64,000 nt of DNA, from NCBI GenBank assembly GCA_028826165.1, contig JAPDFW010000106.1:1-64000 (forward strand), written 5' to 3'. This document shows, piece after piece, positions 21,736 through 64,000 of this stretch. Origin of the DNA: Anaeramoeba ignava BMAN (taxonomy: Eukaryota; Protista; Anaeramoebae). The notes under the pieces are model-generated. The model saw only the letters and a program-made list of their open reading frames with translations. It was not told the origin of the DNA and did no database searches. The translations under genes were made by a program, and so were the position numbers. Each line of letters opens with the position of its first letter. Position 1 is the first letter of the stretch.

Positions 21736-22785
21736 ATGGAACCAACAAATACTTTTGAATTAATTGCAAATGATAAAACCAAATTAATTGGAAAAGAATG
21801 GCTTCCAAAAAACAAGAAAATTGATATAGTTGTTTGTTTAATACATGGATTTGCAGAATATTGTTTAAGATATAAACACGTGGCAAAATATTTTGTTGAA
21901 AGTGGAATCACATTTGTATCGATGGATCTTCGCGGACATGGAAAAAGCGGGGGAAAACAAGGATATGCAGAATCAATTACTAAATTCCGCGAAGATATTG
22001 AAATTTTAATCAATAGTGTTTTTGAAAGAAATGAAAAATTTTTTATTGATCCAAAAAATGTTCCACTTTTTTTATATGGTCATTCAATGGGAGGTTGTTT
22101 AGTTCTCGATTATCTGCTTAATAGAAAGGATCCAAGGCTTTGTGGTCTCATTTCAACTTCCCCTTGGCTTGATCTTCCTGAAGGAACAATTGGAAGTGTT
22201 AAGGTTGTTTTGGCAGAAATTATGAACTATGTTTGGGGAACTTGGAAGGAAAAATCTTCTTTAAAAACTGAATATATTTCAAGAGATCAAAAAGTTGTTC
22301 AGGATTATGAAAATGACCCATTGATTTTTAATAAAATTACAACTAGATTGTTTTGTGAAATTCAACATTCCGGTAAAAATGTTATTAAATTGGCTAAAAA
22401 TTTGGATTTGGGTAAAAAATTAGGGAAAAATTTCCCTATTTTATTATTACATGGTGATGATGACCAAATTACTGACCAAAAATCTACTGAAAAATTCGCA
22501 AGAAGAGCTAAAAATAATGCTGATGTTATTATTCATATTATTAAAGATGGAAGGCATGAACTTCATAATGATCTTGAAAAAGATAGAATTATTAAACTTA
22601 TTCGTGATTGGATTTTTGATAAAACTTTTTCTAATCAAAATCAAAATGAAAATGAAAATGAAAATCAAAATGAAAATCAAAATCAAAATGAAAATGAAAA
22701 TCAAAATGAAAATGAAATTCAATTTGATGAAGATGAATTTAAAAGTTTTTCTTTATCTGAAAATGAAAATGAAAATGATTTTTAA
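21736..22785 (+). CDS. Monoglyceride lipase / lysophospholipase (alpha/beta hydrolase, Hydrolase_4)
   Basis: HGFAEY, DLRGHGKS, nucleophile elbow GHSMGG, LLHGDDDQIT, GRHELHND; low-complexity N/E/Q tail. Confidence 0.93.
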   Translation: MEPTNTFELIANDKTKLIGKEWLPKNKKIDIVVCLIHGFAEYCLRYKHVAKYFVESGITFVSMDLRGHGKSGGKQGYAESITKFREDIEILINSVFERNEKFFIDPKNVPLFLYGHSMGGCLVLDYLLNRKDPRLCGLISTSPWLDLPEGTIGSVKVVLAEIMNYVWGTWKEKSSLKTEYISRDQKVVQDYENDPLIFNKITTRLFCEIQHSGKNVIKLAKNLDLGKKLGKNFPILLLHGDDDQITDQKSTEKFARRAKNNADVIIHIIKDGRHELHNDLEKDRIIKLIRDWIFDKTFSNQNQNENENENQNENQNQNENENQNENEIQFDEDEFKSFSLSENENENDF

Positions 22786-22867: not shown

Positions 22868-23925
22868 GGAAAATAATTTAAAAATGTAATTTAATATTTA
22901 ATTTTATTATTAAAATATTAATTTAATGTTTTAAATTTAAATATTTTATTATTTAAATATTTAACATATAAATATAAAAAATAAGAATAAGTTTAATTTA
23001 ATATTTAATTTCATTATTAAAATAATAATTTAATGTTTTAGATTTAAATATTTTATTATTTAATTATTTAACATATAAATATAAAAAATAAGAATAGATT
23101 TAATTTAATATTTAATTTATAAATTAATTTAAAAATGTAATTTTATATTTAATTTTATGTTTAAAATATTAATTTAATGTTTTAAATTTAAATATTTTAT
23201 TATTTAAATATTTAACATATAAATATAAAAATAAGAATAGATTTAATTTAATATTTAATTTATAAATTAATTTAAAAATATAATTTAATATTTAATTTTA
23301 TTTTTAAAATATTAATTTAATGTTTTAGATTTAAATATTTTATTATTTAAATATTTAAAATATAAATATAAAAATAAGAATAAGTTTAATTTAATATTTA
23401 ATTTATAAATTAATTTAAAAATATAGTTTAATATTTAATTTTATTATTAAAATAATAATTTAATGTTTTAGATTTAAATATTTTATTATTTAAATATTTA
23501 ACAAATAAATATAAAAATAAGAATAGATTTAATTTAATATTTAATTTATAATTTAATTTAAAAATATAATTTAATATTTAATTTTATGTTTAAAATAATA
23601 ATTTATTGTTTTAGATTTAAATATTTTATTATTTAAATATTTAACATATAAATATAAAAATAAAAATAGATTTAATTTAATATTTAATTTATAAAATAAT
23701 TTAAAAATATAATTTAATATTTAATTTTATTATTAAAATAATAATTTATTGTTTTAGATTTAAATATTTTATTATTTAAATATTTAACATATAAATATAA
23801 AAAATAAGAATAGATTTAATTTAATATTTAATTTATAAATTAATTTAAAAATATAATTTAATATTTAATTTTATGTTTAAAATAATAATTTATTGTTTTA
23901 AATTTAAATATTTTATTATTTAAAA
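22868..23925. repeat. ~141-bp AT-rich satellite array 1 (~7 units)
   Basis: Recurring unit AATAAGAATAGATTTAATTTAATATTTAATTTATAAATT...GTTTTAGATTTAAAT...TTTAACATATAAATATAAAA. Confidence 0.9.
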
Positions 23926-24097: not shown

Positions 24098-26997
24098 TTA
24101 TTTTTCTAATCTCTCAAGTGTCCAATTTCCATTTTCTTGAATATCTTTATTATTTGGGAAATTATTCATTGCTTTAATTATTATTGATATTCCTTCTTTT
24201 TTTCTAATTTCAATTCGATTTTCTTTTTATTTATTTTTGATTTGGATTTTAAATTAATTAATTATTTAATTATTTAATTATTCAAAAAAAAGGTTTTTAA
24301 ATTGATAAAAATATTTTACCTTTATTTAAAGCAATATTACTTAAAGCCCAAATTCCATTTTCTTGAATATCTTGATTATTTGGGAAATTATTCATTGATT
24401 TAATTATTGTTGATATTCCATCTTTTTTTCTAATTTCAATTTTATTTTCTTTTTATTTTAATTTGGATTTTAAATTAATAAAATATTTAATTATTTAATT
24501 ATTCAAAAAAAATGTTTTTAAATTGATAAAAATATTTTACCATCATTTGCAGCAATATTACTTAAAGCCCAAATTCCATTTTTTTGAATATCTTGATTAT
24601 TTGGAAAATTATTCATTGATTTAATTATTATTGATATTCCATCTTTTTTTCTAATTTCAATTTTATTTTCTTTTTATTTATTTTTGATTTGGATTTTAAA
24701 TTAATAAATTATTTAATTAATTATTTCAAAAAAAAGGTTTTTAAATTGATAAAAATATTTTACTATCATTCACAGAAATATTAATAAAAGCTCGACAAGA
24801 ATAATTTTGGATATCTTCATTATTTGGGAAATTATTCATTGATTTAATTATTGTTGATATTCCATCTCGTATTCTAATTTCAATTTGATTTTCTTTTTAT
24901 TTATTTTTGATTTGGATTTTAAATTAATAAAATATTTATTTAATTAATTATTTAAAAAAAAAGGTTTTTAAATTGATAAAAATATTTTACCATTATTTGC
25001 AGAAATATTACTTAAAGCCCAAATTCCATATTTTTGAATATCTTGATTATTTGGAAAATTATTCATTGATTTAATTATTATTGATATTCCATCTTTTTTT
25101 CTAATTTCAATTTTATTTTCTTTTTATTTATTTTTGATTTGGATTTTAAATTAATAAATTATTTATTTAATTATTTCAAAAAAAGGTTTTTAAATTGATA
25201 AAAATATTTTACTATCACTATTTGCAGAAATATTAATAAAAGCTTGACAAGAATAATTTTGGATATCTTGATTATTTGGGAAATTATTCATTGATTTAAT
25301 TATTGTTGATATTCCATCTCGTATTCTAATTTCAATTTGATTTTCTTTTTATTTATTTTTGATTTAGATTTTAAATTAATAAATTATTTAATTATTTATT
25401 TCCAAAAAAAAGGTTTTTAAATTGATAAAATAGTTTTTACCATGATCTCCAACAGAAAAATTATGTAAAATAAAACATCCATTTTGTTGAATTTTTTCAT
25501 TTAATTGAAATTCTTTCATCCATTGAATTGTTTTTTCAATATTAATATCTTCTTCAACTTTAATTTCTTTTGTTTAGATTTAATTTTAATTTTAATTTTA
25601 TATTTAGATTTATATTTAGATTTAGATTTAGATTTAGGGAATAAATTACCATAAATTTTGCCTTCTTTTTGTTCTCGAAAATTTTGTAAATTAATTTGTA
25701 TTTTTCTTTCTTCTATTTCAGGTTTATTTTCTCTTTTTGTTAATTCAATTTTATTTTGATTTAAATCATTTTCTTTTTCTTCTAATTTTTGTTGTTTTTG
25801 ATTTATTTCATTTTCTTTTTTTTGTAATTTAGTTTTATTTTGATTTAAATCATTTTCTTTTTCTTCTAATTTTTGCTGTTTTTTATCCAATTTTTGTTGT
25901 TTTTGATCTAATTTTTGTTGTTTTTGGTTTAATTTGGTTTCTTTTTGTGTTAAATTTTCTGAAATTGATTTTAATTTTCCCATTTTTTCATCTAATAAAT
26001 CAACAAAAAAATTAGATGGAAATAATTGAAATAATTGTGTTTTTTCAATTTTTTGAATTTCTTCTTTTGTAATTTGTTTCTTTTCTTGAATTTTAATTAA
26101 AATTTCATAAATAGTTTTTTTAATTGAATTTGAATTTGAATTTGAATTTAATTCTGATTCTTCTTGAAAAGATTGATTAAAATTGAGTTTATTATTTTTC
26201 ATCCATTCAATAATTATTTCTTGAATTAAATTTGTTTGATCTCTTCCAAAATTTGAAATTAAAAAATCAATAATATTTAAGAATTCATTTGTTTTTAATT
26301 TTGAAATTTCTTTTTTCTGAAGAAGATTATTGTAATTTTTAAGAATAAAATTTTGACAAATTTCTAAAAGAAAATTTGAATGAATTTCTTTTGATTTTGA
26401 AAATATTTCAAATATATTATTTTGATTAATAATTGGTTCAATTTCTTTTTCAATTTTAATTTTTAATTTTTCTAATCTAATTATATCAGCAAATTTAAAA
26501 TATTTTTCGAATTCTTGATGATTAATATTGATTTCACCTTCATAAATATATTTGATTATTGGTTCAACAATTTCAAAATCGAATTCTTTAAAATAAATTT
26601 GATTTTCTCCTTTTTCTTTTGTAAATAAATCAAAAAATGAACTTCTTGCATTTAAAATGATTTTGTGGCATTTTATTGAGTTTTCTTTCTCATTTTCTTT
26701 CTCATTTTCTTTCTCATTTTCTTTCTTGTTTTCTTTTTCATTTTCTTTCTTCTTTTCTTTCTTATTTTCTTTCTTATTTTCTTTCTTATTTTCTTTTTCA
26801 TTTTCTTTCTTATTTTCTTTCTTATTTTCTTTACAATAAATTGTAAAATCTGTAAATTGTTTTTGAGTTTGATAAATTTTTGAAAAATTAAGTGATTGTT
26901 CTTTAAGTAAAATATTATCAATTTCTTTGATTGATAATTTGTATAATTCTTTTAAGTTTTCTGTGTTATTGTTATTGTTATTATTATTGTTATTCAT
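24098..26997 (-). CDS. BTB/POZ(-BACK)-coiled-coil-Armadillo protein, copy A: exon 1 26997-25650, cap exon 25566-25441, 5 internal ARM exons, terminal ARM exon
   Basis: BTB: FTDFTIYC..IKCHKIILNARSSFF..IIKYIYEG. Manually spliced exons give ARM repeats such as ENKIEIRKKDGISTIIKSMNNFPNNQDIQENGIWALSNIALNK. Ends WTLERLEK, stop 24098-24100. Confidence 0.9.
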
Positions 26998-27084
26998 TTT
27001 GTAATTTTCTTTTTTTTTTTTAAAAGAAAAAAAATGAAAAAAAAAAAGGAAAATTAGAAAAAAAGGAAAATAAAGAAAAAAAAA

Positions 27085-27752
27085 GGAAAATAATTTAAAA
27101 ATATAATTTAATATTTAATTTCATGTTTAAAATAATAATTTAATGTTTTAGATTTAAATATTTTATTATTTAAATATTTAACATATAAATATAAAAAATA
27201 AGAATAGATTTAATTTAATATTTAATTTATAAATTAATTTAAAAATATGATTTAATATTTAATTTTATTATTGAAATAATAATTTAATGTTTTAGATTTA
27301 AATATTTTATTATTTAAATATTTAACATATAAATATAAAAAATAGAAATAGGTTTAATTTAATATTCAATTTGTAAATTAATTTAAAAATATAATTTAAT
27401 ATTTAATTTTATGTTTAAAATATTAATTTAATGTTTTTATATTTAAATATTTTATTATTTTAAATATTTAACATATAAATATAAAAATGAGAATAAATTT
27501 AATTTAATATTTAATTTATAAATTAATTTAAAAATATAATTTAATATTTAATTTTATTATTAAAATAATAATTTAATGTTTTAAATTTAAATATTTTATT
27601 ATTTAAATATTTAACATATAAATATAAAAAATAGAAATAGGTTTAATTTAATATTCAATTTGTAAATTAATTTAAAAATATGATTTAATATTTAATTTTA
27701 TGTTTAAAATAATAATTTATTGTTTTAGATTTAAATATTTTATTATTTAAAA
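27085..27752. repeat. ~141-bp satellite array 2 (~4.5 units)
   Basis: Same unit as array 1. Confidence 0.9.
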
Positions 27753-27925
27753 ATATGATATTTTTTGAATTTGTGTTTTGAGTTAGTTTTGTTGATTTTT
27801 TATTCTAAAATTCTTTTAAAAATTCTTTCTCAAAATTAAATAAAAAATCTAATTGGTTTGTTATTGTGGTTTTCATTTTTTCTTTTTTAAAAAATAGAAT
27901 TAAAAAGAAATCCTTTTTTTTTTGC

Positions 27926-30900
27926 TTATTTTTCTAATCTTTCAAGTGTCCAATTTCCTTTTTCTTGAATATCTTTATTATTTGGGAAATTATTCATTGC
28001 TTTTTTAATTAATTCATTTCCATTTAATCTTTTAATTTCAATTTGATTTTCTTTTTATTTATTTTTGATTTGGATTTTAAATTAATAAAATATTTAATTA
28101 TTTAATTATTCCCAAAAAAAAAGGTTTTTAAATTAATAAAAATATTTTACCATTATTTGCAGCAATATTACTTAAAGCCCAACATCCATTTTTTTGAATA
28201 TCTTGATTATTTGGGAAATTATTCATTGATTTAATTATTGTTGATATTCCATCTTTTTTTCTAATTTCAATTTTATTTTCTTTTTATTTTGATTTGATTT
28301 GGATTTTAAATTAATAAAATATTTAATTATTTAATTATTCCAAAAAAAAGGTTTTTAAATTAATAAAAATATTTTACTATCATTCACAGAAATATTAATA
28401 AAAGCTCGACAAGAATAATTTTGGATATCTTGATTATTTGGGAAATTATTCATTGATTTAATTATTGTTGAAATTCCTTTTTTTTTTCTAATTTCAATTT
28501 TATTTTCTTTTTATTTTGATTTGGATTTTAAATTAATAAATTATTTAATTATTTCAAAAAAAAGGTTTTTAAATTGATAAAAATATTTTACCATTATTCC
28601 CTATAGCAATATTACTTAAAGCCCAACATCCTTGTTTTTGAATATCTTGATTATTTGGGAAATTATTCATTGATTTAATTATTGTTGATATTCCATCTTT
28701 TTTTCTAATTTCAATTTTATTTTCTTTTTATTTATTTTTGATTTGGATTTTAAATTAATAAAATATTTAATTATTTAATTATTCCAAAAAAAAAGGTTTT
28801 TAAATTAATAAAAATATTTTACCATCATTTGCAGCAATATTTTTTAAAGCCCAACATCCATGTTTTTGAATATCTTGATTATTTGGGAAATTATTCATTG
28901 ATTTAATTATTGTTGAAATTCCATCTTTTTTTCCAATTTCAATTTGATTTTCTTTTTATTTTGATTTGGATTTTAAATTAATTAATTATTTAATTATTTA
29001 ATTATTCCAAAAAAAAGGTTTTTAAATTGATAAAAATATTTTACCATTATTAAAAGAAAGATTATTTAAAGCCCAACATCCATGTTTTTGAATATCTTGA
29101 TTATTTGGAAAATTATTCATTAATTTAATTATTATTGATATTCCATCTTTTTTTCCAATTTCAATTTGATTTTCTTTTTATTTATTTTGATTTGGATTTT
29201 AAATTAATAAATTATTTAATTAATTATTCCCAAAAAAAAAGTTTTTAAATTGATAAAAATATTTTACTATCATTCACAGAAATATTAATAAAAGCTCGAC
29301 AAGAATAATTTTGGATATCTTCATTATTTGGGAAATTATTCATTGATTTAATTATTGTTGATATTCCATCTCGTATTCTAATTTCAATTTGATTTTCTTT
29401 TTATTTATTTTTGATTTGGATTTTAAATTAATTAATTATTTAATTATTTATTTCCAAAAAAAAGGTTTTTAAATTGATAAAATAGTTTTTACCATGATCT
29501 CCAACAGAAAAATTATGTAAAATAAAACATCCATTTTGTTGAATTTTTTCATTTAATTGAAATTCTTTCATCCATTGAATTGTTTTTTCAATATTAATCT
29601 CTTCTTCAAATTTAATTCCTTTTGTTTAGATTTAATTTTAATTTTAATTTTATATTTAGATTTAGATTTAGATTTAGATTTATATTTAGATTTATATTTA
29701 GATTTAGATTTAGATTTAGGGAATAAATTACCAGAAATTTTGCCTTCTTTTTGTTCTCGAAAATTTTGTAAATTAATTTGTATTTTTCTTTCTTCTATTT
29801 CAGGTTTATTTTCTCTTTTTGTTAATTCAATTTTATTTTGATTTAAATCATTTTCTTTTTCTTTTAATTTTTGTTGTTTTTGATTTATTTCATTTTCTTT
29901 TTTTTGTAATTTAGTTTTATTTTGATTTAAATCATTTTCTTTTTCTTCTAATTTTTGTTGTTTTTGATTTAATTCATTTTCTTTTTGTAAATTTTCATTT
30001 TTCTTTTGATTTAATTTTTGTTGTTTTTGATTTAAATGATTTTCTTTTTCTTGTATTTTTTGTTCTCTTTTTTCTAGTTCAATTTTATTTTGATTTATTT
30101 CATTTTCTTTTTGTAGATTTTCATTTTCTTTTTCTTGTATTTTTTGTTCTCTTTTTTCTAGTTCAATTTTATTTTGATTTAAATGATTTTCTTTTTGTAG
30201 ATTTTCATTTTTCTTTTGATTTAATTTTTGTTGTTTTTGATTTATTTCATTTTCTTTTTTTTGTAATTTAGTTTTATTTTGATTTATTTGATTTTCTTTT
30301 TCTTCTAATTTTTGTTGTTTTTGATTTATTTCATTTTCTTTTTGTAAATTTTCATTTTCTTTTACTTTTAATTTTTGTTGTTTTTGATTTATTTCATTTT
30401 CTTTTTTTTGTAATTGAGTTTTATTTTTATTTAAATCATTTTCTTTTTCTTCTAATGTTTGTTGTTTTTGATTTAATTTTTGTTGTTTTTGATTTAATTT
30501 GGTTTCTTTTTGTGTTAAATTTTCTGAAATTGATTTTAATTTTCCCATTTTTTCATCTAATAAATCAACAAAAAAATTAGATGGAAATAATTGAAATAAT
30601 TGTGTTTTTTCAATTTTTTGAATTTCTTCTTTTGTAATTTGTTTCTTTTCTTGAATTTTAATTAAAATTTCATAAATAGTTTTTTTAATTGAATTTGATT
30701 TTAAATTTGAATTTAATTCTGATTCTTCTTGAAAAGATTGATTAAAATTGAGTTTATTATTTTTCATCCATTCAATAATGATTTCTTGAATTAAATTTGT
30801 TTGATCTCTTCCAAAATTTGAAATTAAAAAATCAATAATATTTAAGAATTCATTTGTTTTTAATTTTGAAATTTCTTTTTTTGAAGAAGATTATTGTAAT

Positions 30901-31564
30901 TTTTAAGAACAAAATTTTGACAAATTTCTAAAAAGAAAATTTGAATAATTTCTTTTGATTTTGAAAATATTTCAAATATATTATTTTGATTAATAATTGG
31001 TTCAATTTCTTTTTCAATTTTGATTTTTAATTTTTCTAATCTAATTATATCAGCAAATTTAAAATATTTTTCGAATTCTTGATGATTAATATTGATTTCA
31101 CCTTCATAAATATATTTGATTATTGGTTCAACAATTTCAAAATCGAATTCTTTAAAATAAATTTGATTTTCTCCTTTTTCTTTTGTAAATAAATCAAAAA
31201 ATGAACTTCTTGCATTTAAAATGATTTTGTGGCATTTTATTGAGTTTTCTTTCTCATTTTCTTTTTTATTTTCTTTCTTATTTTCTTTCTTGTTTTCTTT
31301 CTTATTTTCTTTCTTATTTTCTTTCTTATTTTCTTTCTTATTTTCTTTCTTATTTTCTTTCTTATTTTCTTTCTTATTTTCTTTCTTCTTTTCTTTACAA
31401 TAAATTGTAAAATCTGTAAATTGTTTTTGAGTTTGATAAATTTTTGAAAAATTAAGTGATTGTTCTTTAAGTAAAATATTATCAATTTCTTTGATTGATA
31501 ATTTGTATAATTCTTTTAAGTTTTCTGTGTTATTGTTATTGTTATTATTATTATTGTTATTCAT
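27926..31564 (-). CDS. BTB-coiled-coil-Armadillo protein, copy B: cap exon 29618-29493, 6 internal ARM exons, terminal exon; apparent frameshifts at ~30880-30950
   Basis: Near-identical to copy A. Three 1-nt indels relative to A, two of them in homopolymer runs. ARM exons end at about 29268, 29045, 28823, 28592, 28378 and 28151. Confidence 0.85.
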
Positions 31565-31632
31565 TTTGTATTTTTCTTTTTAAAAGAAAAATGAAAAAAG
31601 AAAATTAGAAAAAGGAAAATAAAAAGAAAAAA

Positions 31633-33310
31633 AATAATTTAAAATATAATTTAATATTTAATTTTATGTTTTAAAATAATAATTTAATGTTTTTAGATTT
31701 TAAATATTTTATTATTTAAATATTTAACATATAAATATAAAAATAAGAATAGATTTAATTTAATATTTAATTTATAAATTAATTTAAAAATATGATTTAA
31801 TATTTAATTTTATTATTGAAATAATAATTTATTGTTTTAGATTTAAATATTTTATTATTTAAAATATTTAACATATAAATATAAAAATAAAAATAGATTT
31901 AATTTAATATTTAATTTATAAATTAATTTAAAAAAATATAATTTAATATTTAATTTTATGTTTAAAATAATAATTTAATGTTTTAGATTTAAATATTTTA
32001 TTATTTAATTATTTAACATATAAATATAAAAATAAAAATAGATTTAATTTAATATTTAATTTATAAATTAATTTAAAAATATAATTTAATATTTAATTTT
32101 ATTATTAAAATAATAATTTATTGTTTTAGATTTAAATATTTTCTTATTTAAATATTTAACATATAAATATAAAAATGAAAATAGATTTAATTTAATATTT
32201 AATTTATAAAATAATTTAAAAATATAATTTAATATTTTAATTTTGTTATTAAAATAATAATTTAATGTTTTAGATTTAAATATTTTATTATTTAAATATT
32301 TGACATAAAAATATAAAAATGAAAATAGATTTAATTTAATATTTAATTTATAAATTAATTTAAAAATATGATTTAATATTTAATTTTATTATTGAAATAA
32401 TAATTTAATGTTTTAGATTTAAATATTTTATTATTTAAATATTTAACATATAAATATAAAAATGGGAATAGGTTTAATTTAATATTTAATTTATAAATTA
32501 ATTTAAAAATATAATTTAATATTTAATTTTATGTTTAAAATAATAATTTATTGTTTTAGATTTAAATATTTTCTTATTTAAATATTTAACATATAAATAT
32601 AAAAAAATGAGAATAGATTTAATTTAATATTTAATTTATAAATTAATTTAAAAATATAATTTAATATTTAATTTTATTATTAAAATAATAATTTATTGTT
32701 TTTAGATTTAAATATTTTCTTATTTAAATATTTAACATATAAATATAAAAATGAGAATAGATTTAATTTAATATTTAATTTATAAATTAATTTAAAAATA
32801 TAATTTAATATTTAATTTTGTTATTAAAATAATAATTTAATGTTTTTTAAATTTTAATATTTTCTTATTTAAATATTAAACATATAAATATAAAAAATGA
32901 GAATAGATTTAATTTAATATTTAATTAATAAATTAATTTAAAAATATGATTTAATATTTATTTTTATGTTTTAAAATAATAATTTATTGTTTTAGATTTT
33001 AAATATTTTATTATTTAAAAATTTAACATATAAATATAAAAATGGGAATAGATTTAATTTAATATTTAATTTATAAATTAATTTAAAAATATAATTTAAT
33101 ATTTAATTTTATGTTTAAAATATTAATTTATTGTTTTTAAATTTAAATATTTTATTATTTAAATATTTAACATATAAATATAAAAAATGAAAATATATTT
33201 AATTTAATATTTAATTTATAAATTAATTTAGAAATATAATTTAATATTTAATTTTATTATTAAAATAATAATTTATTGTTTTAGATTTAAATATTTTATT
33301 ATTTAAAAAT
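31633..33310. repeat. ~141-bp satellite array 3 (~12 units)
   Basis: Same unit as array 1. Confidence 0.9.
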
Positions 33311-33481
33311 ATGATGTTTTTTGAATTTGTGTTTTGAGTTAGTTTTGTTGATTTTTTATTCTAAAATTCTTTTAAAAATTCTTTCTTAAAATTGAATAAA
33401 AAATTTAATTATTTTGTTATTGTGGTTTTCATTTTTTCTTTTTTAAAAAATAGAATTAAAAAGAAATCCTTTTTTTTTTGC

Positions 33482-36302
33482 TTATTTTTCTAATCTCTTA
33501 AGTGTCCAATTTCCATTTTTTTGAATATCTTTATTATTTGGGAAATTATTCATTGCTTTTTTAGTTAATTCATTTCCATTTAATCTTTTAATTTCAATTT
33601 CATTTTCTTTTTATTTTTGATTTGAATTTTAAATTAATTAATTATTTATTTAATTATTTCAAAAAAAAGGTTTTTAAATTAATAAAAATATTTTACCTTT
33701 ATTATTAAAAGAAATATTTCTTAAAGCCCAAATTCCTTTATATTGAATATCTTGGTTATTTGGGAAATTATTCATTGATTTAATTATTGTTGATATTCCT
33801 TCTTTTTTTCTAATTTCAATTTTATTTTCTTTTTATTTATTTTTGATTTGGATTTTTAATTAATAAATTATTTATTTAATTAATTAAAAAAAAAGGTTTT
33901 TAAATTGATAAAATTATTTTACCATTATTCCCTATAGCAATATTACTTAAAGCCCAAATTCCATGTTTTTGAATATCTTGATTATTTGGGAAATTATTCA
34001 TTGATTTAATTATTGTTGAAATTCCATCTTTTTTTCCAATTTCAATTTGATTTTCTTTTTATTTATTTTTGATTTGGATTTTAAATTAATAAATTATTTA
34101 TTTATTTATTTATTTCAAAAAAAAGGTTTTTAAATTGATAAAATAGTTTTTACCATCACTATTTGCAGAAATATTAATAAAAGCTTGACAAGAATAGTTT
34201 TGAATATCTTGATTATTTGGGAAATTATTCATTGATTTAATTATTGTTGAAATTCCTTCTTTTTTTCTAATTTCAATTTCTTTTTATTTATTTTGATTTG
34301 GATTTTAAATCAATAAATTATTTAATTATTTAAAAAAAAAGGTTTTTAAATTGATAAAATAGTTTTTACCATGATCTCCAACAGAAAAATTATGTAAAAT
34401 AAAACATCCATTTTGTTGAATTTTTTCATTTAATTGAAATTCTTTCATCCATTGAATTGTTTTTTCAATATTAATCTCTTCTTCAACTTTAATTCCTTTT
34501 GTTTAGATTTAATTTTAATTTTAGATTTAATTTTAATTTTGATTTAGGAAATAAATTACCAGAAATTTTGCCTTCTTTTTGTTCTCGAAAATTTTGTAAA
34601 TTAATTTGTATTTTTCTTTCTTCTTTGATTCTAACTTTGTTTTCTCTTTTTGCTAATTCAATTTTACTTTGATTTAAATCATTTTCTTTTTGTAAATTTT
34701 CATTTTTCTTTTGATTTAATTTTTGTTTTTTTTGATTTAAATCATTTTCTTTTTCTTGTATTTTTTGTTCTCTTTTTTGTAATTGAGTTTTATTTTGATT
34801 TAAATCATTTTCTTTTTTTTGTAATTGAGTTTTATTTTGATTTACTTGATTTTCTTTTTCTTCTAATTTTTGTTGTTTTTTATTTAATTTTTGTTGTTTT
34901 TTATCTAATTTTTGTTGTTTTTGATTTATTTCATTTTGATTTTCTTCTAATTTTTGTTGTTTTTGATTCAAATGATTTTCTTTTTGTAAATTTTCATTTT
35001 CTTTTTCATTTACTTTTTGTTGTTTTTGATTTATTTCATTTTCTTTTTTTTGTAATTGAGTTTTATTTTGATTTAAATCATTTTCTTTTTCTTCTAATTT
35101 TTGTTGTTTTTGATTCAAATGATTTTCTTTTTCTTGTATTTTTTGTTCTCTTTTTTCTAGTTGAGTTTTATTTTGATTTAAATCATGTTCTCTTTTTTGT
35201 AATTGAGTTTTATTTTGATTTACTTGATTTTCTTTTTCTTCCAATGTTTGTTGTTTTTGATTTAATTTTTGTTGTTTTTGATTTAATTTGGTTTCTTTTT
35301 GTGTTAAATTTTCTGAAATTGATTTTAATTTTCCCATTTTTTCATCTAATAAATCAACAAAAAAATTAGATGGAAATAATTGAAATAATTGTGTTTTTTC
35401 AATTTTTTGAATTTCTTCTTTTGTCATTTGTTTCTTTTCTTGAATTTTAATTAAAATTTCATAAATAGTTTTTTTAATTGAATTTGAATTTGATTTTAAA
35501 TTTGAATTTAATTCTAATTCTTCTTGAAAAGATTGATTAAAATTGATTTTATTATTTTTCATCCATTCAATAATTATTTCTTGAATTAAATTTGTTTGAT
35601 CTCTTCCAAAATTTGAAATTAAAAAATCAATAATATTTAAGAATTCATTTGTTTTTAATTTTGAAATTTCTTTTTTTTGAAGAAGATTATTGTAATTTTT
35701 AAGAATAAAATTTTGACAAATTTCTAAAAGAAAATTTGAATGAATTTCTTTTGATTTTGAAAATATTTCAAATATATTATTTTGATTAATAATTGGTTCA
35801 ATTTCTTTTTCAATTTTGATTTTTAATTTTTCTAATCTAATTATATCAGCAAATTTAAAATATTTTTCGAATTCTTGATGATTAATATTGATTTCACCTT
35901 CATAAATATATTTGATTATTGGTTCAACAATTTCAAAATCGAATTCTTTAAAATAAATTTGATTTTCTCCTTTTTCTTTTGTAAATAAATCAAAAAATGA
36001 ACTTCTTGCATTTAAAATGATTTTGTGGCATTTTATTGAGTTTTCTTTCTTGTTTTCTTTCTTATTTTCTTTCTTATTTTCTTTCTCATTTTCTTTCTTA
36101 TTTTCTTTCTTATTTTTCTTTTCTTCTTTTCTTTACAATAAATTGTAAAATCTGTAAATTGTTTTTGAGTTTGATAAATTTTTGAAAAATTAAGTGATTG
36201 TTCTTTAAGTAAAATATTATCAATTTCTTTGATTGATAATTTGTATAATTCTTTTAAGTTTTCTGTGTTATTGTTATTGTTATTATTATTATTATTATTC
36301 AT
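33482..36302 (-). CDS. BTB-coiled-coil-Armadillo protein, copy C: cap exon 34495-34370, 3 internal ARM exons, terminal exon; apparent 1-nt frameshift at ~36115
   Basis: Near-identical to copies A and B. Extra T in a homopolymer of the KKEN repeat. ARM exons end at about 34154, 33923 and 33697. Stop 33482-33484. Confidence 0.85.
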
Positions 36303-36622: not shown

Positions 36623-38099
36623 AAATATTTTGAAAATTGATTTTTGAAATTAAAATTTTATCTTTTTGAATTAAATTGAATTAATATTAATTTAGAAATT
36701 TGTTTTAAAATTTAAATTTATTTAATAATTTTTAAATTCAAAAATTAAATTAAAAATTAAATTAAAATAATTTTCCTTTTTAATAAAAATTAATAAAAAA
36801 AAATAATAATTTATTAATAAATTAATTTAAAAAATAATAAATTAAAAAGAAAATTAAATTAATTATTAATTTAAATTTATTCTTATTTTTATATTTTTAT
36901 TTATTTTTCAAATTCCACTTTTTATTTATTTTTTTATTTAAATTTTTTTTTTCATTTTTTTCCTTTTTTTTTAAAACACAAAAAACAAAAAACACAAAAA
37001 CAAACAAAAAACAAAAAAACAAAATGGATAATAATAATAATAATAACCAAATTGAAATTGAAAATGCAAATCAAAATGAAAATGAAACGAAAAATTTAGA
37101 AAAAAAAGTAACAAAAAATTTAATTAAAAATTATTCAAACCTTTTAAATGGAAATTCATTTAAAGATTTTTCAATTTTTGTTGAGAATAAATCAAATCCT
37201 TTTGAAATTAAAGTTCATAAATCAATTTTATCTTCAAGATCTCCTTTTTTTAATGAGTTTTTAAGGCAAGAATCTCATTCTATTTTTTTAAAACAATTTA
37301 ATAAAAAAGAAATGGAATCAATTTTGAGTTATATTTATTATGGAAATATTTCTTTTGAGAATCAAGAAAATCTTTTTAAATTATTGGAAATTTCAATTTA
37401 TTTTAAATTAAAGCCTTCCCCGCAAGCAAAAATATTTTCTTTTACTTACACTTACAAAAAATTAAGTGTAATCATTCTCAAAAAATTGAGAAAAATGATT
37501 AATAAAAGCAAATATATCTAACTTTCGAAGCTTATCAGGTGATTTTTTTTTCAAAATATCCATTTTAGGAAATGATATACCCAAGCTGCTGCATATAAAT
37601 AATTAGAAGATTAGATTTAAATTTAATTTTCATGCTCAAGAATGAAAAAAATTATTAAAATTTTATTGAAATCAATAATTTCTATTGTTGCAGAACTTTC
37701 AGAATCTGGTCCTATTTTTTTCAACATGCTTAATTTATAGATTATTTTATATTCTTATTTAGGTTCAAATAAATTCAAAAACTTTCGTGTTTTATAGAAA
37801 TAAGATGCTTATTTGTTGATCAAAAATTGGCATTTTTCAAATTTTATATCAACTCATTGATCATTTATTTTGTCGATTTCAACCATTAATCTTCTTTTTA
37901 TTTTTATTTTTATTTGTTTTTCTCTTACTTTTTCTTATTTGTTGACAAACACTATTTAAATAAAAATATTTTATAAAAAAAAAATAACAAGATCACAAAA
38001 CATTTTTCTTTTGACATTTTTAAAATTTTTCTTTTTCTATTTTCTTATTCTGTTTTTATCTTTTTATTTTTCAAATCTTTGTTTTAATTCGTTTTTTAC

Positions 38100-40830
38100 A
38101 TGAAAGCAATAACTTGTTATATTTGTGGGAAAAAAAAAATCCCTAAAGCCCAAGTTCCATCCAAAAATGAATTATTTTTGAAATTAGAATCTACTCAAGA
38201 AGAAAAAGTAATAAAAAATATGTAATCGGTGCTATAGAGATAATTTAAAAATGGTATATTTTACTTATTTTTTTTCTTTTTAATTTTTCTCATTCCATCT
38301 TTTTCAGAAAAATTTATTCAGGAAAAACAAGGATATCAAAGAAGAAAAATAGCTGCCTCAAACAAGAATTAGATTATTTAAAAGAGTTGGTTCAACAACA
38401 AAAAGAAATCAATCACCAATTCTCAATTTATAAAGAAAAGTCAAAAACAATTGAAAACAACTCTCTCTTGGGTGAATATCCTCAATGAAAAATGTGACAG
38501 CATCGCTAGAACTGAAATGGAACTTAGAGAAAATCTGTGTGAAGTTCAAAAGGAAAAAGAAAAATTTGAAGAATCAACAAATCACAATCCACTCACATTT
38601 GATGTATCAACTTACAAAAAGAAAATCAAGATTTAAAAACACAAGTGGAAAAATCAGATTAAAACGGGAATTTGAGGAGATAGTGTATATTATTGGAAAA
38701 TTACTAAACCGAAAAGAAAGGAAAAAAGAAGGAGGAAGAACAAATGAAAAGAGATTCACTCAAAAATCTCTCTCAAAAATCAAACCCTCACTTGATGGTG
38801 AAAATGAAAACAATCAAAATGAAAACAATCAAAATGAAAAGGGAAAAGGAAAGGAAAAACAAAAATTGAATCTAAATCAATTAAAAATTCAGAAAAACTA
38901 TATGAAAACGATCATAAAATGAGATCTGCATTTAATATTGGGACAAAATTGTAGGAATCAGTATTTTCAAAATTTTATAGATTCCTCAACTTATTTGAAA
39001 TCAAGACACAAGATGGGTTTTGCAAGATTATTGCGATGAAGTTAAAATCAAATTAGCTCCAATAGTTAATAGTGTATGGCAGAATCAATTCTAGATTTAT
39101 CTGCAGAGGAAGTAGAACAATCTACTGATCCTTCTTCAACACAAACCATGGAACATATGAGAAAAATCACTTTATATCTGATAAAGATATTGATAAAATT
39201 ACTAACTCCTCAAGAAAATTATTTATTAATAAAAGAATTGACAAATTCATCTTCCCTTCTAGACCTCAAAGAAAAATATATCAATTAGTCATAAGTAAAT
39301 GAAAAAAAAAATTCAATCGAAAGAAAAGATCAGAACAAGAATAATTCAAATCAACAGATAGAGAATGAATCTCAACCAGAAATCGATTCCACTAAAAATA
39401 GATTCGATTTTTCTCATGATGTAGCATATTCACATCGGAATAACCGAGCTGCAGATGCATGCGCAATTTTTATTGAAGCGAACACAAAATTTAACAGAAT
39501 TATACATTACCAAAGAATGAGCTCAACTTCAACCATCCATCCACAAAGTTTAGAGGGATTTTTGATTCCCAAAGGAATACAAAAAGCTTTCGGAGAAATA
39601 CAATATCCTTGCCACGGTCCATGACCAGAATACCTCATCTAAAAGTTAAACAGTGTTTCCCGAATATCATGCATTTACTAGATCCCTGGCACGTAACTAG
39701 ATCAATTCGAAGAAGATACAACAAACTTGTTAACAAATTCTGTGGATCAAATAAAAAGAAACGCTCAAAAAGAAGAAAGCGAGAAAATGCGAAAAAGAAC
39801 ATTTGATGTCATGGAAAGAATCTATAATTTTTCCATTTTCTAAGATGTGTGCAAAAATCTTGCCAAGGCGATATGACGACTTTATTATCTGAATGGTTTA
39901 GATATTTTCTCCACGCTAAAAGGCGATCATTCCCCTTTGCCCAAAAATAGTCCATGCACAAAAAATGAAAATTCAAACGAAAAATAAACATCCTGAAGAT
40001 AAAAATTACAAACAAAGAGGAGGAAGCATTCTTCAAAATGATACTTTCTGATTTCACCATTATTAAAAATTAATTTTTGTAGATATTTTTATCCACAAGC
40101 TACAACGAATCCTTTTTCAGCACTTTTAAACGGTTATCATGAAAAATAAGTCATTTTAAAAATTATAATCTTCTTTATCAACTTGCCATCATTGATTGGA
40201 ACCAAAATAGGGAAAAAGAAAATGAAAAGGAAATAAATTTAGGAAACCAAGAAACGAAATTGAATTCAATGAAAAATGCATTACAAGAAAATCAAAAAGA
40301 AAAAGATATGGAATGGCAAAAAGAATTACTTCATCTCTCTTTTACCAGGTATCTTTCAAAAAGTACATCTTATTTGAAGAATTTAACTCTCTCAAGAATC
40401 AAAAAAAAGAAAAGAAATAGCTCAGAAGAAATTGTCCCTCCTCAAAAAGAAAAAAAAAGAAGTAGAAAGTCACCAAAAAGAAGCAAGTTTAAAAACAAAA
40501 ACTTGATCTCAACATTTTTATTAAGTAAGATTCAACCCAATTTGTTTGATTTTGAAAACTATTCCTTGCTTCCTACATTTCAAATCCATTTCAAAGATGC
40601 TTTGGAGATGTTAAATCAAAAAGAAACTCATAAACAAACTCAAAAGGAAACAGAGAACTCATGTCCCAATATACATGATTTGCACATTTTTCCAATCAAA
40701 ATCCTTCATTGTTATCAAGAAAAAGTAAAATCGATAATAAAAATGACGTTCCCATTCAAACAAAAACAAACAATCATAATGCTATCCAAAATATTCAACT
40801 TCCAAAACCAGAGAAATTCAACTCCTTGAG
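38100..40830 (+). pseudogene. Fragmented DDE transposase (Kolobok-like)
   Basis: N-terminal CYICG..CNRCY. Catalytic-region motifs across shifting frames: FSHDVAYSHR (~39410), ATVHDQN (~39615), HLLDPWHV (~39675), STSYNESF (~40095), LAIIDWNQN (~40185). Many frameshifts. Confidence 0.7.
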
Positions 40831-40932
40831 GAAGATTATATACACAACAAAAGAGAAGAAATAAAGAGATTTCTGAATGATTTAATTGATAACCCCATTA
40901 ATCTGTATCTTCCAAAGTGGGATACAAGGATC

Positions 40933-41860
40933 ATGTGGTGGAAAAGATGGGACTTAGAGCAAATGCTGGAGTCTCAAGATTTGTCTATTGGATTAGTAAA
41001 TTTTTTATATCCTCAATATCAAAATGATGTAGAATTTACCAGATTAGATTTTGAACCCACGATCCAAAAATTACATCAAGAATACAAAGATTTTCAAGCA
41101 TTCAAGAACAGAAGAAATCAAATTTATGAAGATTTTGATAAATTTTTAGAAGCTTCAAAAAAAAGTTATCCCAAATTGATTGACCATTTCAACAATTTCG
41201 TTGAAAATCGACCGAGAATGAACAAAATAGATGTCTTTTCTAATTGGTTGATGTCTCCAGAACTCAGAAACCAAATTGAATTGTTTGAATCGTTAATAGA
41301 ATTTGAGAAAGGAGTGGATGGTTGGAAGCAATTAAGAACAATATTATTTAATTTTTTGAAGAATGCGAAAAGATTGATGAAATGGGATGAAAAGGAACCT
41401 TTTAGATATTATACCAATAATATATTTGACTAATCATCATTATGTGTGTTTTTTGATTGATAAACAATTTCATAAAATCTATTTATATAACACTATTCCA
41501 AAATATGCAAAAAAGGAAGTAGAAGATATGGGAAATCATATAAAACAGTATATTAAATGGCGCATAAATGAAAATTATGAAATTGAAGAACTAGTCAAGA
41601 AAAAAATCCAAGAAGATGGCGCCCAATGCGGGAATTCAGTACTACTTTTTTTATGGTTGATTTTCACTATTAAAATTCCTATTGAAAAAGCAGTGGAAAT
41701 TATCAACCATTCACTTGCTGTCAGATTTAGATTCATGATCCTAAAATGTATTTGTAAATCAACCAGAATTCAATTATTATTCAAATCACCAGAATTCATT
41801 CAAGATATAATACAAAATCACCCCAAAAAATATCGGCACAATTCATTTTTTCTTTTTTGA
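40933..41860 (+). CDS. Ulp1/C48-like cysteine protease region carried by the transposon (frameshifted; possibly the C-terminus of the transposase gene)
   Basis: IIPIIYLTNHHYVCFLID..KIYLYNT..KIQEDGAQCG matches the His..Asp/Asn..Gln-x-Asp-Gly-x-x-Cys-Gly order of Ulp1/SENP proteases. Confidence 0.7.
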
Positions 41861-44145
41861 TGAATCTCTCTAATTTTTAAACGTTAAATTGATTTTTTTT
41901 CAAATCATTTTTTCACATCTTTTATTTTTCAAAATCTTTTACAAAGAAAAAATAAAGAATTTTTGTTGAAGGAAATAATTGAATTTTGTATTGGATTCAG
42001 TTAAAATTAATATATTTCAAAATGAAAAAAGAAAAAATTTGAAAAATTGATCAAAACAATTATCTTTTGAATTCTCATAAATTTCTTATTCATATCATTA
42101 ATTGAATTTTTCTCATCAATTTCTTTCTCAATAATCAAGTTCAGTTGTATGAAACAGAATAGAAAAAAGAACCAAAATGAAGAAATATTCAACAAAATTT
42201 TCCAAAAGATAAAAATTTGTTTGAAAAGTTTTGGATTATGAAATTATGGAGATTGTCCCAAATAAAAAAAAAGTAGTATTTCTTTTTCTTTTTCCAAATA
42301 GAAAAAATTGATATTTTTTTAATCTATTCTTTAATTATTTTTTTTAATAAAAAGGGGAAAAATCAAATTTTTTATTTTTTTTTATTTTTTTTTCAAAGTG
42401 ACAGCTGTCACTTCAAAAGGGGAAAAAATGACAAAATATTTTTGCTTGCGGGGAAGGCTTTAAATTTATTGAAAGAATTTATTCAAAAAAAAATTTCAAA
42501 TTCAATTAATTATTCAAATTTTTTCCAATTTTTATTCCAAAATCGAAATTTAAATTCAAATGAAATTGAAATAAAATGTTTTGGATTCATAAATCAAAAT
42601 TTTTCCCAAATTCAAAATAATGAGAATTTATTCAATTTAACTAAAGAAGAAATTATCAAATTTATTCAATTTAAACAAGAAAAAAAAGAAATTTTTCAAT
42701 TTGATTTTTTTCAATTTTTAAATAATTGGATTGAAAAAAGAAATAAAAGATTAAAATTAAAGAAATATGAACACAAAATGAATGCAAAGAAAAGATTATT
42801 TCATTCTTTTTTTTCATTATTTGATAAAGATTCAATTTCAAAACAAGATTTTGATAAATTAAAACAATTTGATTTTTTTCCCAAATCTTTTTTAGTTAAT
42901 ATTCAAAACAAAGTTATTCAAGATAATCAAAAGGAAATTGAAGATAAAGAGAAGGAAATTGAAGAGAAATGGAAGAAAGAAGTTGAGAATAAAAACAAGG
43001 AAAATCAACAAATGAAAATTGAAATTGAAGAGAAATGGAAAAAAGAAGTTGAAGAACTTAAATCCAAATTTGAATTAATGGAATTACAAAAGATTTTTTC
43101 AGATTCAGAAATTATTCAAGATATTGAATATGTTAAGAAATTACAAGAATGGATAAATGATAATGATTTTTTTTCTAAAATGAAAAAAGGATTTTCAGCA
43201 AAAAGAGTTGGATTTGATTGTAAAAAATGGCATAAAGCAGTTGATGGGAAAGGAAAAACATTAGTTATTATCAAAACAAAACAAAATTTTATTTTTGGAG
43301 GTTTTACTCAAGTTGGATTTAAATATTCAAATGGAGAATGGATTAATGATTCAAATGCATTTATTTTTTCATTAAGAAATGATAAAGGGGATAGAATACC
43401 TGCAAAGTTTACAATTAAAAAAGGTCAAGAAGGAAATGCAATTTATTCTAATTTAAGTTATGGTCCAAATTTTGGAAATGGTAGTGGAAATGGACATGAT
43501 TTTTATTTAACTTCTAATTTACAACCTGGTAATTCAAATATTGGTGGTAGTTATAATCTACCTAATGGAATTACTTATAATACAGATGAAGCTAAAAGTT
43601 ATTTAGCTGGTTCTTATAATTCATGGGTTGTTGATGAACTTGAAACTTATTTCATTTAAAAATTAATTAATAATAAGAAAATCAAACTTTTTTTTATTTT
43701 TTTTTTCAAAATTTAATTCAATTTTAATTTACTTTTAATCAAATTAATTTCTTTAAAATAAAAAATAAGAAACGAATTTAATTTTAAATAATTTAATTTT
43801 AATTTAAAATATTTATTAAAAATTTAATTAATAAAAAATAATCCAAAAAAAAATAATAAATTTTAAAAATTGAATAATTTTAATATAATAAATAAAAATA
43901 AAAATTGAAAATAGAAATTAATAATAATTAAATTTAAATTCATTAATTAAAATATTAAAATAAAAATCAAATAAAATTTATTATTAAATAATATTTAAAT
44001 ATTAGTAAATTATAATCAAAATCAAAAATAGAATAATTAGTAAATTATTTTTAGAAAGTTTATCTTATTCAATCATGTTAAATTCAATTTATTTAAAAAT
44101 TTTTAATTTTTAATTTTATTTTTAATATATTTTATTATAATTAAA

Positions 44146-51278: not shown

Positions 51279-51944
51279 TTATAAATTAATTTTTTGTTTT
51301 TGTTTTTGATAAAATAAAATTAATTTTTTCTATTTTTTTTTTGTTTTTTTTTTTAATTTAAAAAGGAGAAAATCTTCTTTTTTTTCTTCTTTTTTTTTTT
51401 AAATTAAAAAAAATTAAAAAATTAAAAAAATCTTTATTATTTTAATTATTTTTCAATTATTATAAAGTTTTAATTTAATCTAAATTATTATAATCTTTTT
51501 TAATATTTTATTTTGAATTGATTTATCAATTTCAAATATATTTAAATAATTTAATAAAAATCTTTTTTGTTAATTAAAATATTTCTAAGATTAATTTTTT
51601 CTTTTTTTCTCTTTTAAAAAGAATTGAAATAAATAATGGATATTAAAAATGGTTATCTATACTTTATGGGTTTGAGAAATAATTTTTATTCTAATTAAAT
51701 TTCTTTTTATTGATTAAATATTTGTGATTGTTTATTTTGTAATTTTTGGATCATGAAAACATAAAATTGGAAATATTTTATTTTAATCATTATATTAAAA
51801 TTTTTTTTCTTTTTTAAAAGATAATACTTGATTTAATTTGTTTTTCAATTAAATTTTGACATGAACAAAAATGAAAAAAAATGAAAAAATGAAATTTAAA
51901 AAAATTGGAAAGTAAAAAAATCCAAATTTGATATCCAAAATTCT

Positions 51945-52460
51945 AATTTATAAATTAATTTAAAAATATAATTTCTAAAATAATTTTATGTTTAAATAAT
52001 AATTTATTGTTTTAGATTTAAATATTTTCTTATTTAAATATTTAACATATAAATATAAAAAATGAAAATAGATTTAATTTGATATTTAATTTATAAATTA
52101 ATTTAAAATATAATTTAACATTTAATTTTATGTTTAAAATAATAATTTAATGTTTTAAATTTAAATATTTTCTTATTTAAATATTTAACATATAATTATA
52201 AAAAATAAGAATAAGTTTAATTTAATATTTAATTTATAAATTAATTTAAAAATATAATTTAATATTTAATTTTATTATTAAAATAATAATTTATTGTTTT
52301 AGATTTAAATATTTTATTATCTAAATATTTAACATATAAATATAAAAAATAAGAATAGATTTAATTTAATATTTAATTTATAAATTAATTTAGAAATATA
52401 ATTTAATATTCAATTTTATTATTAAAATAATAATTTAATGTTTTAGATTTAAATATAAAA
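51945..52460. repeat. ~141-bp satellite array 5 (~3.5 units)
   Basis: Same unit as array 1. Confidence 0.85.
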
Positions 52461-55401: not shown

Positions 55402-55934
55402 TTTTGTTTCTTTTTTGTTTTGTTAACTATTTTATTTTAAAAATAAATAAATAAGAAATTAATAGAAAATGAGTTTATTTTTGTGTGTTTATTAGGTAAA
55501 AAAATTATTTTTTTTCTTACTTTTTTGTTCTTGTTTTTGTTTGAAAGAAAAAAAGAATAAGAAAAGAAAAAATGATTAATTTTTTTTTAATTAAATAAAA
55601 TTGAGAAAAAAAAATGATTATTTTGTTTATTCTTTTAATTAAAAAATTGAATAAATGAATTTAAAATTAAAATTAAATTATATTTTAGGAATAATTTTTT
55701 ATTATTAATTAATGATAATTTCTATTTAAATTAATGAATAAATTTTAATTTAAATTTTCCAAAAAAAAGAAAAAGAAATTTAATAAGAATTTAATAAGAA
55801 TTTAATAAGAAAAAGAAAAAGAATTTTATTTCTAATTATTAATTAAATCTAAATTAAATCTTAATTAAATCTAAATTAAATCTAAATAAAATCTAAATTA
55901 AAAATTTGATTCAAATTTATTTCTTTTTCTTTTT

Positions 55935-63600: not shown

Positions 63601-64000
63601 CTTCTTGAAAAGATTGATTAAAATTAAGTTTATTATTTTTCATCCATTCAATAATTATTTCTTGAATTAAATTTGTTTGATCTCTTCCAAAATTTGAAAT
63701 TAAAAAATCAATAATATTTAAGAATTCATTTGTTTTTAATTTTGAAATTTCTTTTTTTTGAAGAAGATTATTGTAATTTTTAAGAATAAAATTTTGACAA
63801 ATTTCTAAAAGAAAATTTGAATGAATTTCTTTTGATTTTGAAAATATTTCAAATATATTATTTTGATTAATAATTGGTTCAATTTCTTTTTCAATTTTAA
63901 TTTTTAATTTTTCTAATCTAATTATATCAGCAAATTTAAAATATTTTTCGAATTCTTGATGATTAATATTGATTTCACCTTCATAAATATATTTGATTAT
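57680..64000 (-). CDS. BTB-coiled-coil-Armadillo protein, copy D (5' end beyond the right edge): exon 1 to 62200, cap exon 62142-62017, 17 internal ARM exons, terminal exon
   Basis: Same BTB/BACK sequence as copies A-C. ARM exons end at about 61788, 61572, 61348, 61139, 60920, 60699, 60477, 60255, 59864, 59638, 59413, 59192, 58970, 58750, 58351, 58125 and 57899. Stop 57680-57682. Confidence 0.9.
58567..58722. mobile_element. 156-bp intronic insertion flanked by the 18-bp direct repeat GTTTTTAAATTGATAAAA (copy 1)
   Basis: Absent from sibling introns; direct repeats at 58549-58566 and 58723-58740. Confidence 0.6.
60072..60227. mobile_element. Second copy of the same 156-bp intronic insertion with the same 18-bp direct repeat
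   Basis: Direct repeats at 60054-60071 and 60228-60245; the sequence appears identical to copy 1 by eye. Confidence 0.6.

Follow-up and report, generated by a model that had tools for sequence, protein, structure and literature searches.

Exon-per-repeat shuffling is already known from families of leucine-rich repeat (LRR) and tetratricopeptide repeat (TPR) proteins. In Ectocarpus, LRR and TPR genes carry one repeat per exon, undergo exon shuffling so intense that paralogy is blurred, and are born and lost rapidly, with diversifying selection acting on their ligand-binding repeats (2012; PMC3341825). In Tetrahymena, LRR genes consist of phase 2 exons of exactly 90 bp, lie in tandem clusters and vary strongly in copy number; unequal crossing-over within and between genes was proposed as the cause (Xiong et al. 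2019; PMC6564038). Here, we analyzed the first 64 kb (the window) of the 213-kb contig C107 (JAPDFW010000106.1) of Anaeramoeba ignava BMAN, whose genome comprises 42.8 Mb in 147 contigs. Three tandem genes, called A, B and C, lie on the minus strand of this window in a very AT-rich region (9 to 17% G+C), with a paralog, D, 21 kb away, another, E, 125 kb off, and a sixth, F, on contig C89. Together, they are a young tandem subfamily of six genes in which a head of BTB and putative BACK domains (BTB-BACK) and a coiled coil precede an array of armadillo repeats, each repeat being encoded by an exon of its own (a cassette; 44 in total). We consider it likely that this subfamily diversified by recombination between cassettes paired out of register.

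The A. ignava genes share with those of Ectocarpus the exon-per-repeat organization, the symmetric intron phase, the changes in repeat number and order between paralogs, signs of recombination and, as far as nonindependent repeat pairs can tell, an excess of nonsynonymous differences (pN) in helix 3. They differ in that the repeat is an armadillo and not an LRR or TPR, in that it is attached to a BTB-BACK domain and a coiled coil instead of the GTPase/kinase or NB-ARC modules found there, and in their host, an anaerobic amoeba related to metamonads. Like the Tetrahymena genes, they display fixed-length exon arrays, a single intron phase, variable copy number and tandem clustering, but their exons measure 129 or 132 nucleotides (nt) in phase 1 rather than 90 nt in phase 2, encode armadillo repeats and number hundreds rather than tens of thousands; in addition, transposons interrupt F and the gene beside C. 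Since the repeat is an armadillo, A to D are not members of the LRR or TPR families. The distinguishing features are the armadillo repeat, the 129/132-nt phase 1 exon and the BTB-BACK head.

Like KLHL and KBTBD proteins, the products of these genes have an N-terminal BTB domain, a putative BACK-like helical domain and then a C-terminal repeat domain as the presumed substrate binder. Unlike them, they carry a predicted armadillo solenoid, reached via a long coiled coil, and a 12-nt low-complexity repeat in the first BTB hairpin. Our domain search gave no Kelch match in the gene, whose C-terminal part consists of armadillo cassettes; the gene is therefore not a KLHL/KBTBD member, though its product may work like one. 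Another BTB protein, human ARMC5, acts with Cullin-3. Armadillo repeats are combined with a BTB domain both in ARMC5 and in plant ARIA and ABAP1 (PMC8121025), but in those proteins the armadillo repeats come first and the BTB domain last, the reverse of the order found here, and they are single-copy and conserved, without BACK and without cassette exons. The reversed domain order means that the genes described here do not encode ARMC5- or ARIA-type proteins. As in designed armadillo proteins, constant caps surround a variable number of modules, and the cassette profile matches the internal designed module; those proteins are engineered, whereas the arrangement in A to D is natural and encoded exon by exon. 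Neither "BTB" nor "armadillo" appears in the text of the Anaeramoeba genome paper (PMC11550330).

Mosaic cassettes and a hybrid terminal exon

The anatomy of A to D was observed directly, with exons analyzed one at a time: a short intron separates a long exon 1 from a first armadillo-like exon that is constant between genes (ARM0), and the internal cassettes and a terminal exon follow. The encoded protein would thus run from BTB-BACK and coiled coil through an N-cap-like ARM0 and n armadillo modules to a C-cap. Internal cassettes number 5, 6, 3 and 17 in A, B, C and D, and 6 and 7 in E and F; with ARM0 and the terminal exon included, the armadillo-like repeats of A, B, C and D number 7, 8, 5 and 19. 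All 31 cassettes of A to D are exons of 126 to 132 nt with AG...GT borders in phase 1-1, each encoding a repeat of 42 to 44 amino acids (aa). Their size is 129 or 132 nt, with the sole exception of C1, which a 6-nt in-frame deletion shortens to 126 nt. The introns that follow are near-identical and measure 80 to 100 nt (about 94), so that the exon-plus-intron unit averages 224 nt. Because each repeat occupies a single phase 1-1 exon and the introns are near-identical, out-of-register recombination would add, remove or replace repeats in frame.

The array of A spans positions 24320 to 25344 of the window (A1, 25213-25344; A2, 24991-25119; A3, 24764-24892; A4, 24541-24669; A5, 24320-24448; all genes and cassettes given here are on the minus strand). 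B holds B1 (29268-29396), B2 (29045-29173), B3 (28823-28951), B4 (28592-28723), B5 (28378-28506) and B6 (28151-28279), and C holds C1 (34154-34279), C2 (33923-34054) and C3 (33697-33828). The first-pass annotation of this DNA had listed the motifs and order of these cassettes; all 14 are in the sequence as listed, and so are the 17 it counted in D. ARM0 is present in every gene as a 126-nt, phase 1-1 exon with AG/GT borders (A, 25441-25566; B, 29493-29618; C, 34370-34495; D, 62017-62142), differs by only 1 to 3 nt among A, B and C, and is a probable N-cap.

The cassettes are mosaics, and the footprints of recombination between them were read directly from the alignments. A3 and B1 are identical over all 129 nt, despite standing third and first in their arrays. 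B5 has the helix 3 of this pair but differs from it at 8 sites, all in the 5' half. Within A, a two-cassette block is duplicated, A1-A2 matching A3-A4 at 430 of 443 aligned bases (97%). Two 5' motifs (IRIRDG and RKK) and two helix-3 types (ANSD and VND) occur in all four combinations (A1, A3/B1, B5 and C1), which point mutation cannot explain, and C1 alone has an intron whose donor-side start is of the ARM0 type. Among the 14 cassettes of A to C, 28% of the informative site pairs fail the four-gamete test, and in a test resembling the pairwise homoplasy index (PHI), neighboring sites were less incompatible than in all permutations (0/2,000).

The terminal exon, which begins with EIKRLNGNEL in B and C and with EIRKKEGIS in A and D, had been called chimeric, and at the DNA level it is a true hybrid in the latter two genes. 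In its unmixed form (B, 27929-28050; C, 33485-33606; also E and F), this exon differs from the cassette consensus at 13 to 14 sites within exon positions 19 to 47. In the hybrid exons of A (24101-24222, C-cap-like) and D (57683-57804, the same as in A), the differing sites, 14 linked ones within 29 nt, all read as cassette, while terminal-specific bases are kept from position 51; in A, the patch corresponds to 24176-24204 and the terminal-specific sequence starts at 24172. In both genes, the right breakpoint falls between exon positions 47 and 51, within one and the same 3-nt interval. A genome-wide search located this exact junction nowhere but at the ends of A and D and in D7, an internal cassette, and the unmixed form was found in B, C, E and F. 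A breakpoint inside the exon is therefore present, as the first-pass annotation proposed, but a crossover is not the only process that would leave it: the left edge cannot be placed, and crossing-over, which would also change the cassette number, is indistinguishable from short-tract conversion. Nor can descent of the hybrid from a common ancestor of A and D be told from two like events.

Two further features of the terminal exon deserve mention. Cassette D7 (60477-60605) has a terminal-exon mark, K-A-M (G at exon position 51), and may be a former last exon that now lies inside the array or the product of a simple point change. The terminal helix 3 (N-K-D-I-Q-E-.-G-N-W-T-L-E-R-L-E-K) resembles the C-cap helix of designed armadillo proteins (N-E-K-I-Q-K-E-A-Q-E-A-L-E-K-L), a likeness that would explain why cassette sequence overwrote only the 5' half of this exon.

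We built a maximum-likelihood tree from 42 cassette units of A to F (15 of them from D), each unit being an exon with the intron after it; this tree is deep and structured by type. The "NYSC" cassettes form one clade (100/99) with members from all six genes, and E6 is paired with F7, likewise at 100/99, both standing directly before the cap. On this tree, the six cassettes of B account for six label changes and the three of C for three, i.e., they show no clustering by gene, whereas 14 of the 15 D cassettes and 5 of the 7 from F do cluster, which points to amplification within those two genes. The tree of the heads of A to D is effectively a star, as the head offers only about five informative sites outside repeats. 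Across A, B and C, cassettes fall together by type rather than by gene. Cassette types are thus older than the gene copies, and the arrays differ in which types they kept, copied or overwrote. A and the more distant E have in common the order NYSC(AN.D), KY, NYSC(VND), KN, which suggests that this is the old order and that B and C departed from it. Two other candidate signals were set aside: the position of A5 within the D clade was dropped as a sign of exchange, A5 being equally distant from B6, D1, D9 and D11, and sites in the 3' flank that group A with B and C with D were not relied on, as most fall inside a satellite.

We propose that, in a gene unit built of four nested tandem-repeat classes, out-of-register cassettes would pair and undergo unequal crossing-over or gene conversion, either within an array or between neighboring paralogs. 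Such recombination would add, delete, duplicate or overwrite whole or half repeats, and the frame would always stay open. ARM0 would act as one cap and the 3' half of the terminal exon as the other, and both would persist; recent duplication and purifying selection would keep the heads alike, and helix 3 would diversify. The exchanges would have taken place in the germline. Exchange between paralogs, which the first-pass annotation had deduced, is indicated by the identity of A3 and B1 and by the hybrid end of A and D as against B and C, but it is not cleanly separable from intragenic exchange, nor from the loss of different cassettes out of one ancestral array. In the arrays, too, crossover is indistinguishable from short-tract gene conversion. 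A faster turnover of the armadillo region than of the rest of the gene had also been claimed; the arrays do differ where nonrepetitive parts diverge by less than 1% (coding) to 2 to 4% (noncoding), but all four repeat classes vary, not the cassettes alone.

Repeat identity, head domains and age

The tandem repeats of about 42 aa in A to D match the armadillo profile. A single cassette scores 18.6 bits against Pfam Arm, just below the cutoff of 20.6, over profile positions 3 to 41 of 41, and a profile of 22 cassettes matches designed armadillo proteins (E = 1e-13), the LRRK2 ARM domain (5e-11) and importin-alpha (7e-6). In known armadillo proteins, helix 3 is the ligand-contact face. In tryptophan-type cassettes of A to C, the ratio of nonsynonymous to synonymous divergence (pN/pS) is 5.1 in helix-3 codons versus 0.35 in the remainder, ratios that are descriptive only, since the repeat pairs are not independent. 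Overall diversity is 0.11 in cassette exons and introns alike, with the exon variation concentrated in helix 3; the notion that cassette exons are more diverged than introns holds for this helix only. Helix 3 thus appears to be under diversifying selection and would be the part that binds the target.

Exon 1 contains a BTB domain (Pfam PF00651, E = 6.1e-12, 46 bits against a cutoff of 20.5) and a putative BACK domain that scores 18.3 bits, below the Pfam cutoff of 20.9. A phmmer match to KBTBD2 covers query residues 3 to 167, and the closest solved sequences are KBTBD2, KBTBD4, KLHL3 and KLHL11. For the AlphaFold model of the head, built with ten paralog heads (predicted local distance difference test score, 67), the best folds are KBTBD4, KBTBD2, the vaccinia A55 BTB-BACK-Cullin-3 complex, SPOP and KLHL11. 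Its top Foldseek matches are all BTB-BACK chains, with template modeling scores of 0.4 to 0.6 and weak E values, and the ESM Atlas neighbors of the head are BTB or BTB-BACK clusters. A search for homologous proteins with exon 1 of C minus the 12-nt repeat (whole, and residues 1 to 240) returned none, which is uninformative on absence, the whole-exon run having probably been swamped by the coiled coil. The most likely role of these proteins is to serve a Cullin-3-type ubiquitin ligase as substrate receptors, and their armadillo array would grip the target. The BTB-BACK head suggests that the system being diversified serves ubiquitination and degradation rather than signaling.

The near-identity of the BTB/BACK regions noted in the first pass is borne out by the measured divergence. 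Over 877 nt (BTB-BACK plus N terminus, with the 12-nt repeat left out), A and D differ by 0.46%, A and C by 0.68% and C and D by 0.91%; between A and B, there are 5 substitutions in 719 nt. The head of E differs from the others by 1.6 to 2.2% and that of F by 2.6 to 3.9%. Synonymous divergence (pS) in the head amounts to 1.3 to 2.0% and pN to 0.3 to 0.7%, giving a pN/pS of 0.2 to 0.3. Near-identical untranslated regions (UTRs) had been noted as well; divergence is 1.6 to 3.6% in the 3' UTRs and 2.7 to 4.4% in the 5' flanks of A, C and D, but 8 to 10% in the 5' flank of B. The likeness of the heads therefore follows from recent duplications and purifying selection on the head, and no special homogenization is needed. 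This young age and purifying selection, together with the frame breaks in B and C and the copy-number changes in the other repeat classes described below, go beyond what the first-pass annotation contained.

Gene integrity and rival explanations

Gene A (24098-26997) is intact, with a reading frame open from the ATG at 26997; its 1,348-nt exon 1 (25650-26997) encodes the N terminus, the 12-nt repeat, BTB, BACK and a 103-aa coiled coil, and is followed by ARM0, five cassettes and the hybrid terminal exon. Gene D is also intact, with a 398-aa coiled coil and 17 cassettes; it occupies 57683-64000 of the window and extends to C107:64402, just beyond it. Gene B (27926-31564; exon 1, 29732-31564; 264-aa coiled coil; six cassettes) and gene C (33482-36302; exon 1, 34560-36302; 251-aa coiled coil; three cassettes) have, as assembled, lost their frames in exon 1. 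In B, a compensated pair of indels (-1 at 30946, +1 at 30934) is accompanied by a -1 in an A-run at about 30881, after which the frame stops at 30862; in C, two extra A's in the 12-nt repeat (36109-36126) lead to a stop at 36035. The length of exon 1 fits phase 1 in A and D (1 mod 3) but not in B and C (0 mod 3). These breaks may mark young pseudogenes or unpolished long-read errors in multicopy DNA. Open frames and splice borders are kept in all cassettes, ARM0 and terminal exons of both genes.

The indels of B and C also bear on an alternative in which the copies themselves, or their cassette numbers and orders, are artifacts of assembly, that is, mis-joined haplotypes or expanded or collapsed repeats. 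Published Anaeramoeba assemblies combine Nanopore reads with short-read polishing (PMC11550330), single-base indels are of the kind that such assemblies leave in multicopy DNA, and no independent contig encoding the 399-aa open reading frame of B is on record. The copies, however, sit inside a 213-kb contig with unique genes on either side, and their differences are codon-coherent substitutions and not noise. Open frames and AG/GT borders run through all 14 cassettes, ARM0 and terminal exons; the arrays of A to C, at 0.7 to 1.3 kb, are far shorter than a typical long read; E and F are clear paralogs (93% in the flanks) and not alleles; and about 700 cassettes elsewhere are of the same design. 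This internal evidence speaks against gross mis-assembly, which we regard as improbable, but it is no substitute for reads. We also think it unlikely that paralogs and arrays are old and that only the heads were kept identical, by repeated gene conversion. Such a history would fit the best-matching cassettes, which are mostly 4 to 6% apart where the heads differ by less than 1%, as well as the diverged 5' flank of B and a few head sites common to B and E. Yet synonymous divergence in the head is close to that of the 3' UTRs and of the A, C and D 5' flanks, so that the whole unit looks young; the genes are also close to one another in their last intron and in the one that follows ARM0, and the extra divergence of cassette exons is nonsynonymous and lies in helix 3.

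We give very little credence to programmed diversification, in which cassettes would be skipped in splicing or rearranged in the soma and the germline differences would be a by-product. All cassettes are in phase 1-1, so any subset could be skipped in frame, and a like proposal has been made for the comparable genes of Ectocarpus (PMC3341825). Against it, the footprints are fixed in the assembly and are accounted for by ordinary germline recombination, and none of the sequencing runs found for this stretch, all kept as Logan contigs, is recorded as RNA; one sample contributed four DNA-like runs, and a single run came from another study. It is likewise a long shot that the BTB-armadillo genes constitute an inherited repertoire of ubiquitin-ligase receptors for intracellular recognition (e.g., of symbiont, virus or transposon proteins), to which single cells would add cassette skipping or somatic recombination. 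Out-of-register recombination between cassettes in a young subfamily is the explanation we favor, and several points weigh against it. A single long-read assembly, together with sequence logic, underlies the copy numbers, the cassette order, the splicing and the frame breaks of B and C, and the binding of Cullin and of any ligand is predicted. For the majority of cassettes in A, B and C, no paralog holds a near-identical counterpart; their nearest neighbors are 5 to 8 of 129 nt apart, so that the history of events cannot be reconstructed. Moreover, the PHI-like test, like the pN/pS ratios, draws on nonindependent repeat pairs.

Other repeats, neighboring genes and the wider family

Copy number varies in all four tandem-repeat classes of the gene unit: the 12-nt repeat, the heptad-based coiled coil of exon 1, whose lengths in A to D are given above, the cassettes and a satellite of 143 to 145 nt. 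The 12-nt repeat (26681-26832 in A, with like places in C and D) encodes K-E-N-K runs; its copy number differs between paralogs, at about 12.7 in A, 12.7 in B and 7.7 in C. It lies between the first two BTB strands (...FTIYC / SIKCHK...), i.e., in the first BTB hairpin, and the structural model of the head was begun just after it, with low confidence in its first 29 residues. The AT-rich satellite lies on either side of all gene units on both contigs, those of D, E and F among them, in about 2 to more than 11 copies. One tract (27087-27751, 4.6 copies) lies between A and B; others are found at 23000-23924 (6.5 copies), 31631-33307 (11.6 copies), 51937-52456 and 55934-57505, as well as upstream of D and at C89:15093-18058. 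This satellite is probably the substrate for duplication of whole gene units.

The introns after D8 (59993-60254) and D14 (58480-58749) measure 262 and 270 nt instead of the usual 94 nt or so. Both contain a common insert, about 170 nt long and bordered by a 17-nt direct repeat, with 0 mismatches and 8 gap positions between the two, which implies that a six-cassette block was duplicated within D after the insertion. No retrotransposon was seen beside the cassette units, where none was looked for systematically.

The unique flank of the cluster is marked by an intact alpha/beta-hydrolase gene just downstream of A (21736-22785, plus strand; Pfam Hydrolase_4, E = 6e-59), which has a low-complexity tail rich in Q, N and E. 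A second, different BTB gene stands head-to-head with C (37024-37518, plus strand), D (C107:66325-66471, plus strand) and F (C89:5346-5567, minus strand), but not with A or B. The block that duplicated earlier was therefore a divergent pair of genes, whereas A and B stem from tandem copying that involved only the armadillo gene. The head of F is split within BACK by a 5.1-kb insertion (C89:6927-12036) that is 96% identical to an element in the BTB gene beside C (37408-42500); the same transposon has therefore recently struck two genes of this type of neighborhood.

The family extends well beyond these six genes, as a direct genome-wide count shows. The cassette core motif M-N-N-F-P-N-N, with one mismatch allowed, has 706 matches in the genome (control, 0), with arrays on many contigs, and the head matches 96 places. 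The device described for LRR and TPR genes would here act on armadillo repeats attached to a probable Cullin-3 adaptor. At about 2% neutral divergence, the copies are young enough for single recombination footprints to be read and for structural change to be set against point substitution within one group of genes. In its natural layout of a cap, n modules and a second cap, the array parallels the choice that protein engineers made for designed armadillo binders. Genes A, B and C show how the likely target-binding domain can diversify in a family of about 700 repeats.

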